The translations under genes and the position numbers were made by a program. 22,109 nucleotides of DNA from Oopsacas minuta. Taxonomy: Eukaryota > Animalia > Porifera. The notes below the pieces were generated by a model, which was not told where the DNA came from, did no database searches, and saw only the letters and a program-made list of their open reading frames with translations. Positions within the stretch are counted from its first letter, which is position 1; each line of letters starts with the position of its first letter. The stretch spans positions 1 to 22,109 of the forward strand of contig JAKMXF010000104.1 in NCBI GenBank assembly GCA_024704765.1, read 5' to 3'. This document shows positions 2,585 through 22,109 of the stretch, in pieces.

Positions 2585-3151
2585 CAGAGCTGCAAATGGG
2601 TCAGATGAAGTGACCCATGGGTCATAACCCATTTATTCTTTTCTGACCCATTCTGACCCATATGGATTTCATTATTAGGAGCAAGTATAATGTAAGTATT
2701 CAGTCTAGCACAATAATTAAATCAAGTTGTTTTTATATCCATTCAACAAAACAGAGACAGCTTCGATAGTTTCTGGCAACATTGCATCCCGTTGAGATGT
2801 TATGATATGCCGAAGATTAAGGCACTAAAGTGTCTCTCGCTTTCGAATGAGGATGCCTGAATTACCAATAGTCCCATGGCAATTTTTGATAATAATGGAA
2901 ACCTAAGTTTATTCTGCTTCCACCAATCAAGGAGATTAAAATTCTCACTTGTAGTATTCCAAGCATTTAGTATAATGACCACCTCTATTACTTCCAATTA
3001 GAAGGTTTTCTAATTGACAAATAACTTTTTTTAAGGCTACATTGTATATAAGTAAAATTTTGATGGGTCATGACCCATTAACGCATAACTCATGACCCAC
3101 TGATCCATCTGACCCATTGACCCATGGGTCAGTGACCCATTTGCAGCTCTG
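2585..3151 (-). mobile_element. Non-autonomous hAT element (internal-deletion derivative), 567 bp
   Basis: Perfect 19-bp TIRs CAGAGCTGCAAATGGGTCA and an exact 8-bp TSD CACCGAAA (2577-2584 and 3152-3159). Clusters of subterminal TGACCCA motifs lie at both ends, including the palindrome TGACCCATGGGTCA near each end. Confidence 0.95.
2800..2997 (-). pseudogene. hAT transposase C-terminal dimerisation-domain fragment
   Basis: LLDWWKQNKLRFPLLSKIAMGLLVIQASSFESERHFSA matches the hAT dimerisation motif (WW...FP.L..IA...L.I.ASS..SER.FS). Confidence 0.88.
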
Positions 3152-3270
3152 CACCGAAATGACGTCATATCCCAATAGTGGTAATACAACGGAAAGTTTA
3201 TGGTGTCGATTTAATATTTTGACCACATAGAACATGCCTAGTTGTAATAGTTACCTTAGTACGTCATTAT

Positions 3271-3290
3271 GGCGATTTTGGCACACTGTG
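3271..3290 (-). repeat. Putative right terminal inverted repeat of the Transib element, beginning with an RSS-type heptamer
   Basis: The minus strand reads CACAGTG-TGCCAAAATCGCC: an exact V(D)J RSS heptamer followed by an A-tract/AAAATCG motif like that of known Transib ends. Orientation and distance fit the upstream transposase. Confidence 0.7.
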
Positions 3291-6280: not shown

Positions 6281-7410
6281 CTGAGTAACTACGTTATACC
6301 TCCTTTTGGTTGGTGAAACTAATGAGTTTTCAAGCTGACAAGTAATGAACTGTAGGAGGGGTAACAAAGTATTGCCCTTTATATCATGCTCAGTTATTTC
6401 TGTATTTTCTAATATCGAGATTGATGATTGTAATTTAGTGACGGTCTCTTTGATATTTTCAAGAACAATACTTGATTCAAATAACCCCGGATTAGTGTAG
6501 TTTAGAATATCACCAATTAAGGTCTCAATTTGTCCTATATCTGTTAATCGACTGAGACTCAAATGAACTTGGTGTTGGCAACAAACTGCTGAAACTGTTA
6601 AATTTGAATGAATCGATAAGGTAGATAGAATATGTATAGACTGATTGGCGAATTCCAACTGTAGATCTCTAAGATATTACTAGAGGAGTACTAGATCGCC
6701 CAAACTTGATTAAGGTGTAACTCTGGCAACTTAATTTAAGATCCTCAAAATTCCCCAAACCGAACCGTAATGAATCTTGCTGATCCTGTATAATGCTATC
6801 GTGGAGAGCTTTAGCAAAGTTTTACTCTTCCTTAGATTCAAGATTTAAACGCTTTGCTATTTGACCAGTCGTATTCAAATATGATGGGCCTGCTTGGAAA
6901 ATAATAGACACTGCGTTCGGGCGATAAATTGGTCTGATGCGTGGTATTTCAGAGTAGCTACCATCAGCTTGGAGTGCCCGGTCAACGCGAATAAGATCTT
7001 CCTCCCTAAAATGGTGCATGCAAATGAATATCTTATCCTCTGGAAGGTCTTCGGCTAGATCCCTATGAAGAGCTCTAATCCACTTCTCTTTCAAGTCTTT
7101 GGATCCTTTCGGTAAACTGAAAACGGTGCCAGTAGGGTGACCTCGGTATTAGTTTTGTACCCCAATACAGAACATGTATTTGGCATTAAGAAGTGTCTAA
7201 AATACATGTGAATAAAAGAAAAAGGTAAAACAAAGAAGGAGGAAATGTATAAAGACGAAAAATCAGGGAATTCCAGTCATGGGAAAAGTTCCGCGAAAAT
7301 ACAGCATAGAATATTCCAAAACAGTACCTGCATTCATTTAATAAAATAAATTAATGATATAATCTAATTATGGTTTAGTTGTTATGTGGTTATTAATAAT
7401 ATTCTATTTC

Positions 7411-19120: not shown

Positions 19121-20545
19121 ACTGATCGAACTTGTACCAAGTATCTAAATTCAATTTCAAATGTATACACATATTCATTTAAAACATACTTTGAACAAGT
19201 ATCTAAAGTCAATTTCTTCTGTCTCCAGATTTCTACGCTGAATCAGACCTTTTACAAGTTTCTGAATTCAATTCAACCGTCTGCACAAATTCAAGTTGAT
19301 TATGATTTGTATCAAATTTCTTGATACACTTCCAAATATGTGAACTAATTCATGGTGAATCTAACTTGTCAAGTCACTTCCTTCTATTTCATCAGTCTAC
19401 ACTTATTCACTGTGATTCTGACATTTTAACAAGTTTATATATTCAATTTCACTTGTCGCCAACTATTCAATTATATTTTGGCATATAACAAGCTCACACT
19501 TTCTATTCCAAGTGTCTGAGACCACATTCACTATGACAATTGTGGTAATAGGGCTAGGCATTGAATTTCCGTTGTCGGCACCTATTCACTGTGATGCTGA
19601 CTTGTAACAAGATGACACATTCAGTTTCAGTTTTCAGCAGCTATTCACTGTGGTTCAAACTTGCAACAAGGATACACATTATATTTCAGTTGGCACACCT
19701 ATTCACAATCATTCTGAACTCTCGCAAGAATAAATATTCATTATATTTTGTTATACATACTCCCTTAGATTATGAATTGGAACAAGCCTAACATTCCAAT
19801 TCAGTTGTCAGCACCAATTCACTGTGATTCTGACCATTAGTGAGTTTAAACATTCAATTTCTTTGCACCCCTGTTCACTGTGATTCTGACATTGTACCAA
19901 GTGTAAATATTCAACTTCAACTGTCTTCACATATTCATACTGATTTTGACGTATAACAAGAATTGTTAATCAATTTCAACTGTTTAGCTATATTTACTGT
20001 GATTGTGACTCATAACATGTTTACTTATTCAATTTGTACTGTATGCGCATATTTCGTGTAATACTGACCGGCAACACGGTAAATCATTCAATTTCAACTA
20101 ACTGGATATATTCACGGTGATTCTGAACTGTAACGAGGTTAAGCTTTCAATTTCAACTGTTTCTTCATACATTTCGTGTGATATGGACTAGTAATAAGGT
20201 TGATCTCTCAAATTAACTGGTTAAAGTGATTCTGGCCTGTTACAAAGACAATCGTATAATTTCAACTTTCTGCACATATTCAATGTAGTTCTTATGTCAA
20301 CAACTTTAATCATGCAGTTTCAACTATCTGTACTGATTTAATTTGGATTCGAACTTCAAAAAGTTAATCATTCAATTTCAACTCTATGTACTTATTTAAT
20401 TTGATTCTCAACTGTAACAAGTTTAATCATTCAACTTAAAAACTCTTCACATATTTACGATGATTCGGACCTGGTACAAGTCATATCATCTAATTTCAAT
20501 TGTCTAGGCCTATTCACCGTGATTCTAACATGTATCAACTTAGAA
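19121..20545. repeat. Diverged tandem array, 59-bp period, ~24 units
   Basis: TTCAATTTC-like anchors fall at about 19150, 19208, 19267, 19326, 19382, 19442, 19501, 19561, 19620, 19679, 19737, 19794, 19853, 19910, 19969, 20028, 20087, 20146, 20207, 20255, 20313, 20371, 20430 and 20489. Hand consensus: TTCAATTTCAACTGTCTGCACATATTCACTGTGATTCTGACTTGTAACAAGTTTAATCA. Confidence 0.95.
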
Positions 20546-20547
20546 GT

Positions 20548-21080
20548 TATTAAATAAGTAATTTGGTGAATAATTATAGAGATAAATAAGTTAACAAGAC
20601 CAATTATAAATGATCCATTTCTTTACTGTGTACGAAGAAAGTTGGTTTAAAATAGAAGAAATATGGTTATTGCGAATACATTTTGAAATCAACCGAGCTT
20701 ATATAATTTGAATCAATTGAATTGAACAGATCTGAACATCAGTATCCCATACAGTATCGGATTGCAATAATCTAGATTAGTAATAATGAAGTCATGTGCT
20801 AGGCTAAGCGTTCTAGTATATTTCTATCAAGATATATGGTAGTATTACTAATATTACTAATAATACGAAGAGCAGAGCTGTTACAGAGCAAATTAGAATT
20901 TACGATAATACCTAGATCTCTGATATTATCTACAGGTTCAATTGAGTGCCCATCAATTAATAGTTTCATAGTTGGAACCACCTTCATAAATTTATAAAAG
21001 AGTGAAAATATTGTATTTGCTCTGGATTCCATGTCATCGTATTCATTTTAGCATTTAAAGATTTTAGATCAAGTCCAAAG
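20548..21080 (-). pseudogene. L2/CR1-group non-LTR retrotransposon, post-RT C-terminal ORF2 fragment
   Basis: In order across frameshifts: TWNPEQIQYFH, LIDGHSIEPVDNIRDLGIIVNSNL, NLDYCNPILYGI, QLIQII*ARLI...NHISSILNQL...VKKWIIYN, YSPNYL. These match the L2-clade motifs V..VRDLGV.LDS.L, LDYCNSLL.G and LQ..QN.AAR.I...HI.P.L..L. Confidence 0.82.
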
Positions 21081-21704
21081 TGCTATTCCCTGGGCCGGAT
21101 TTAAGGTAGTGAGGGGAGTATTTTGTAGAGGTCCTCCAAATATTTATTCTATATGAACTTGAGTACTTGATACATTCAAAGAGTGACATAATATGAATTA
21201 TTGGCCCGAAAAGAGAAGATATCGACTTCATCATGCACTGTTGAAAGATTGTCCTTTATATTGTACCCACTATATTATAGTATAGTATATATGATGTAAT
21301 ATTCATGTGGTTCTATGAATATGATCGATGATTTGGTTCAAATTCACTAAGGATAGTAGAATTGGACCTCGCAATCTGAACTTCGTTAATCATAATCTTG
21401 CCAATCCGAACGGGCCCGAAAGGGTATACAACTTTGGAAAAGGTTCAAAAATTTCCAAAGTAACTAATAGCAAATTATTCTCCCGATATTGAATAATCTT
21501 GGTAAAGAGTATTCCGGAACGTTTATCTTCCGCTTCCATAAACATATCACATGTATGAACACCCACGTCTTTCGCAGCACCAAGATAAGAGATTACAGAA
21601 AGATAATACACAGCAAACATTTTCTATTTCTGAAACTTTTCGTATATTCCCTATAAATAGGGCTGCCCACTCCGAGTCAACATAGAATTAACGATGAATA
21701 TATA

Positions 21705-22109
21705 CAGGGGCATTCAATAAATACTAATCATACCATCTAAAACTATAGATACTTGTGTAAAGTTGGTAATTTTTGCTATGAATGTTCAAAGTAGTCTCCT
21801 GATATGCTACAACTGAATTTAGCCTTTTAATCCAATTTTCAAATGTCTTTCTGTACTCATCCTTGGGAATGACTTCAAGGTATCCGTAAATTGCCCAACC
21901 GAGGCTGAGCCGATCCTCAAATTCGCGTCCGGAGAGGTTGTCTTTGAGTTTTCTAAACAGCCAGAAGTCACATGGGGCTATATCAGGGGAGTAAGGTGGA
22001 TGTGGAACTTCGTGCATACCCATATCTTTAATTTTTTGCCTTACAGCCAAAGATTTATGCGGTCTAGCATTATCATACAAAATTTTGAGACCACGAGTTC
22101 CAGTCTTTG
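21705..22109 (-). mobile_element. Mariner family 2, 3' part, runs off the window
   Basis: TA (21703-21704) then CAGGGGCATTCAATAAATACTAATCA. These 405 bp are the reverse complement of 17223-17627: same length, same translation, and no mismatch in the stretches I compared. Confidence 0.95.

Follow-up and report, generated by a model that had tools for sequence, protein, structure and literature searches.

The tandem repeat at 19121-20545 of the window, by which we mean the whole 22,109-nucleotide stretch of Oopsacas minuta DNA that was analyzed, probably (at a probability of about 0.72) represents a single locus in a satellite family of the O. minuta genome that is old, dispersed, and low in copy number. 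This family, whose monomer is 59 bp long, is apparently undescribed in print. The window corresponds to the first 22,109 bases of the 28,395-base contig C104, and we searched the assembly of 61,460,524 bases in 365 contigs. Since many large contigs of the assembly also carry the repeat and the neighboring transposons, contig C104 is native to the genome. The published genome comprises 365 scaffolds, ~61 Mb, with 36% G+C and 34.1% interspersed repeats, in which DNA transposons represent 15.4% and "unclassified" repeats 18%, and satellites go unmentioned in that paper (PMC10280926). One more curated satellite family would improve masking and annotation of a genome with such an unclassified fraction. 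The features of the window that concern the array and its surroundings are as follows.

17630-18920, + strand: 1.29-kb non-coding element that is multi-copy in the genome, where at least 18 copies are nearly full length (82-96% identity).
18921-19120: left flank of the array, single-copy by own-genome search, in which the multi-copy matches end at ~18920-18927.
19121-20545, + strand: array of 24 head-to-tail 59-bp units (probable satellite), delineated by TRF, repeat finding, unit HMM, unit-by-unit global alignment, and BLAST.
~19121-19137, + strand: partial unit that opens the array and precedes the 24 full units.
19138-20535, + strand: full units of the array, by global alignment.
20195-20242, + strand: the single short unit of 48 bp, by global alignment to the consensus.
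20546-21702: right flank of the array, essentially single-copy, with only three short weak matches in the own-genome search.

Within 19121-20545, autocorrelation is highest at lag 59 (0.42 versus a background mean of 0.28, sd 0.02), and the unit HMM matches the + strand without a break between 19138 and 20534. TRF detected only the best-preserved stretches of the array. Global alignment to 24 copies of the consensus yielded unit lengths of 57-61 bp and one of 48 bp, which bears out the period and the number of units in the original prediction; the short unit carries an internal deletion of ~10 bp, roughly in columns 27-36. BLAST matches between this array and others start at 19125 and end at ~20555. 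As had been noted from the letters alone, no two of the AT-rich units are identical, and the window units show 73% identity to the family consensus. The two subtypes proposed within the array receive weak support (identity 0.62-0.66 within and 0.57 between, permutation P = 0.0055). We confirmed that the array is non-coding, as predicted, since there are stops in every frame, the period of 59 is indivisible by 3, the longest ORF touching the array encodes 85 aa, and the longest one wholly inside it encodes 76 aa. A satellite is recognized by head-to-tail copies at a constant period, by the absence of coding, and by arrays of the same monomer family at other loci. The window array displays the first two of these features, and the third emerged from the rest of the genome.

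A search for homologous arrays, one of the checks originally suggested, revealed 47 other genomic places matching the window array at 65-84% identity. Allowing up to three mismatches, the core 19-mer has 117 matches in the genome versus 16 for a reversed control. In brief, we built a sequence-only unit model from 70 units and scored 150 candidates genome-wide, which gave at least 171 units in at least 30 contigs, and these genome-wide figures are lower bounds. The arrays contain 2-25 units each and occupy ~40 or more dispersed sites. Two more of them lie on contig C104 past the window, at ~24.7-25.7 kb (- strand) and 25.8-26.1 kb (+ strand). On some contigs the arrays are regionally clustered, such as at C244 657-702 kb, C327 292-336 kb, and C364 27-64 kb. 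One solitary high-scoring unit was found at C45, in unique sequence. No telomeric repeats were found at any examined array locus. Outside this genome, a metagenome pattern scan for two conserved blocks 59 bp apart retrieved 101 loci, none of which had a unit-HMM match.

We estimated the age of the family from a clean-cut set of 122 units from 19 loci. Mean identity to the family consensus is 74%, and pairwise identity is 64.5% within arrays versus 61.2% between loci. An ascertainment-free re-cut of whole arrays (178 units) gave 64.8 and 61.2%, respectively, and included units that have decayed to 58-66% identity. Since identity within arrays is so close to that between loci, the 59-bp family is old and barely homogenized. 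Unit similarity is flat at ~66% across lags 1-7 in the 122-unit set and drops slightly with distance in the window array, from 0.64 to 0.60. The maximum-likelihood tree of the units is nearly star-like, with internal branches accounting for only 15% of its length. Together, the flat pairwise identities and the short internal branches indicate that the units have drifted almost independently since an old amplification. A weak locus signal is detectable in this one species, as the nearest neighbor comes from the same locus for 35% of units versus 7.6% expected. The CpG observed/expected ratio is 0.46 in units versus 0.70 in the window, with TpG/CpA in excess, a pattern that old silent DNA would be expected to show. 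Turnover has nevertheless occurred occasionally, in the form of local block duplications, inversions, and transposable element (TE) insertions. In the C55 array (L033, C55:965.4-966.9 kb), a 3-unit block is duplicated 472 bp (8 units) away with 88-95% identity, and the C299 array (L039, C299:1078.5-1079.0 kb) is younger, with 76-82% identity between units and a peak at lag 3. The family also offers a clean case of a probable satellite in which homogenization has all but ceased.

The columns of the unit are not equally preserved, with consensus frequencies ranging from 0.37 to 0.94. The best-kept blocks are ATTCAATTTCA (columns 12-22) and ATTCA (columns 36-40), at 83-84% consensus frequency, and the loosest columns are 1-11, 41-43, and 53-59, at 52-70%. 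The layout first proposed for the unit is thus borne out in part, but the "more variable" ~11 nt correspond to columns 23-35, which show an intermediate consensus frequency family-wide (75%). The nearest-neighbor pair chi-square is 179 (df 58, disjoint pairs), whereas the values from uniform-rate array simulations run through the identical pipeline (12 started, 10 usable) averaged 57 and reached 71 at most. This heterogeneity holds within A/T columns alone (P = 4e-9), the column profile of the window correlates with that of the other loci (rho 0.69), and the profile obtained without HMM ascertainment correlates with the first one (rho 0.91). Strictly uniform decay, which the original prediction had named as an outcome that would speak against it, is thus not what we observed, but the departure from it is mild. 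Gamma-distributed rates raise lnL by 28.6 with an alpha of 5.9, and empirical site rates span 0.54-1.55, about threefold overall. Relative to the mean, the two best-kept blocks evolve at 0.64-0.77 and the loosest columns at ~1.27 (block rates of 0.64-0.82 versus 1.26-1.28), a difference of only about twofold, and no column is invariant. Some "variable" columns are bimodal (column 42 with G at 0.41 and T at 0.42, column 47 with T at 0.57 and A at 0.34), which looks like old variant polymorphism. In the whole-array re-cut, gaps occupy 1.5% of positions versus ~24% for substitutions, a contrast that is uncalibrated against neutral DNA of this genome. Most likely, the column differences are mainly mutational and genealogical, perhaps with weak constraint, and given their robustness, the ATTCAATTTCA and ATTCA blocks may be under weak selection.

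Such selection would be expected if the arrays were phased protein-binding sites, with ATTCAATTTCA and ATTCA bound in a satellite of the centromere, heterochromatin, or insulator type. We consider this improbable. The two blocks are indeed better kept across independent arrays than uniform-rate simulation allows, the 59-bp phase is maintained with few indels, and the arrays are regionally clustered on C244, C327, and C364. However, the constraint is weak according to the rate estimates above, invariant columns are lacking, units have been free to decay, the palindromes of the unit, which would be natural dimer sites, are not preferentially preserved, and the total copy number is merely some hundreds of units. 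A more elaborate version, which we regard as slightly less probable again, is that weak selection might keep both blocks via a putative sponge protein and that the array clusters might mark a centromere-associated or heterochromatin-nucleating domain. To our knowledge, no centromere sequence is known for any glass sponge, and if the clusters prove to be one site per chromosome, the 59-bp family could be considered as a candidate marker of centromeres in this group. Still more remote, and in our opinion very improbable, is that the array is a precursor transcript cut into ~59-nt RNAs with guide-like variable segments, in a snoRNA-, piRNA-, or CRISPR-like manner. A regular unit length and segments differing in conservation would suit such a precursor, and five units fold with a marginal z-score of -2.3 on the + strand, but the score is -0.3 on the - strand, and the fold has no repeating structure on either. 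No Rfam family reaches threshold anywhere in the window. Both palindromes that had been predicted, TCAC-N-GTGA and CTTGT-A-ACAAG, are in the consensus, the latter spanning the unit junction, but the full TCAC-N-GTGA is kept in only 16% of units. When we carried out the covariation check that had been suggested, TCAC-N-GTGA pairing was no better than shuffled (z 0.08), CTTGT-A-ACAAG pairing showed a marginal excess (z ~2), and neither palindrome displayed any compensatory change. A structured RNA is recognized by compensatory changes or by a match to a described family, and the 59-bp unit has neither. In a repeat-spacer system the variable segments would be mutually unrelated, whereas here the variable columns share a 52-70% consensus. 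The "variable" segments are homologous among units (68-70% consensus), as the original prediction had noted in favor of a mundane origin, and are therefore faster-drifting columns rather than independent spacers. Finally, arrays are found back to back in both orientations, which also argues against a precursor transcript.

An alternative that we judge unlikely, if a little less so than the binding-site one, is that the arrays are remains of tandem repeats inside a DNA transposon, the rest of the carrier having decayed beyond recognition. The candidate carriers are foldback-like arms, a Helitron- or MITE-type element with an internal array, or part of the abundant Transib/RAG1-like elements. 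Short arrays spread over many sites in a genome rich in DNA transposons (15.4%; PMC10280926) would fit this scenario, but the flanks of the arrays speak against it. We compared the flanks at 23 array ends, over lengths of up to 400 bp, all-against-all by BLAST and nhmmer and found none common to more than two loci, a comparison whose sensitivity is limited at ~61% identity. The flanks of the window array itself are single-copy, and the 1.29-kb element to its left stops 200 bp short of it and is elsewhere unassociated with the 59-bp family. These findings support the original view that the array is not accounted for by any TE in the window, and they provide no sign of the shared non-repeat flanks or termini by which an internal repeat of a known TE, another outcome named beforehand as contrary, would be recognized. 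In addition, there are no collinear copies among arrays, with a best z of 2.3 over many diagonals. These results weaken the transposon scenario, but only in part, since flanks of a carrier as old as the units, at ~61% pairwise identity, would be nearly invisible.

Each candidate carrier resembles the arrays in some respects. As in foldback (FB-type) elements, several loci have two inverted 59-bp arrays 0.1-4 kb apart, and inverted junctions are present at 9 loci. However, both polarities are represented among these junctions (- then + as well as + then -), and instead of mirroring each other the arms are 70-80% alike, the same as random unit pairs, which points to rearrangement rather than to a foldback element. 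Foldback elements have inverted arms with defined outer ends and a single polarity, whereas the surroundings of the 59-bp arrays revealed neither conserved outer termini nor target-site duplications, and the window array is unpaired on its left. Tandem repeats inside non-autonomous elements of the Helitron/Helentron or MITE type are known in bivalve and insect genomes, and arrays of 2-25 monomers over many sites resemble them, but the 59-bp arrays are without common left or right flanking modules, and the C45 unit stands alone. That solitary unit was considered as a progenitor TE and rejected because it is surrounded by unique sequence, as were identical 19-mers at C6 and C66, which belong to an unrelated young repeat with a chance 20-bp resemblance. 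The case for Transib rests on proximity and on a heptamer. RAG1-like ORFs lie within ~1-5 kb of arrays at 7 of the ~19 examined loci, with a geometry that varies by locus, but with 846 RAG1-like/Transib first-look candidates genome-wide, this proximity may only reflect TE-rich islands. The recurrent neighbors of the arrays are only remnants of Tc1/mariner, RAG1-like (Transib), and hAT-like elements, and since such remnants abound everywhere, we discarded them as an explanation. The heptamer CACTGTG is present in the window subtype of the unit; it also forms the end of a Transib at 3284-3290 of the window and belongs to the CACAGTG-CACTGTG motif of Transib terminal inverted repeats and recombination signal sequences (RSS). 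This link was dismissed because only 7 bases match and because, family-wide, no part of the unit is less conserved than the CTG at the center of the heptamer (52%). By eye, the unit has no evident likeness past the heptamer to the Transib end (3250-3290, with TGACCCA repeats), where there is no unit-HMM match either.

Under the satellite scenario, unequal exchange or slippage would have multiplied an AT-rich 59-bp monomer into short tandem arrays, and arrays or array seeds would then have reached dozens of sites, by a route that can no longer be traced. The units have since drifted mostly independently, to ~26% from the consensus and with little homogenization, and the mild column differences most likely reflect mutational context (AT-biased mutation and CpG loss) plus old variant polymorphism, perhaps with weak constraint. 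A sequence-specific function is unnecessary to explain the features of the family. The preference for a decayed minisatellite over a functional array that was expressed at the outset is thus supported by the homologous variable segments, the non-covarying palindromes, and the star-like tree. In dispersed euchromatic satellites of invertebrates, a single monomer family is spread over many loci in the form of short arrays (PMC5615363). The 59-bp family resembles them in having 1) head-to-tail, AT-rich monomers of fixed length in many short arrays genome-wide, 2) more and less conserved segments within a non-coding monomer, and 3) TE-rich surroundings and local block duplications. It departs from them by its low copy number, hundreds of units, and by very little concerted evolution (65% within arrays versus 61% between loci).

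The surroundings of the arrays yielded several additional observations. Many of the RAG1-like ORFs are intact, at an identical length of ~720 aa, which suggests recently active families. A TGACCCA(T)-rich Transib subterminal block at 3060-3140 of the window is seen again at the start of C349 (L035:1-90), 2.5 kb from a 59-bp array. A transposon-like terminus, GTAGAAGCCGCTTAATCGGGAC, adjoins two arrays, at L038 ~6400-6490 (C364) and L029 ~1750-1840 (C25), and probably belongs to a small, abundant element that inserted into arrays or beside them. Also at C364, a hAT-like C-terminal fragment (L038:5404-5739) sits between two parts of a 59-bp array and is a TE insertion that has split an old array. 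Within the 1.29-kb element, the (TCTG)n tract (18274-18318 in the window) reaches ~0.5 kb at C23:33230-33737, with lesser expansion at C310 and C22. A single N at 17199 marks the junction of two repeat families. Finally, the 3' part of a young mariner-like element is present as two inverted copies, at 17223-17629 and 21703-22109, which bracket the array region. Over 407 bp, these two copies match at 100% identity, whereas more than 25 other genomic copies are at 94-97%, most of them at 96-97%, and the right copy runs into a 1811-base run of N (contig 22110-23920). The inverted pair reflects a local inverted duplication or else an artefact of scaffolding or gap filling.
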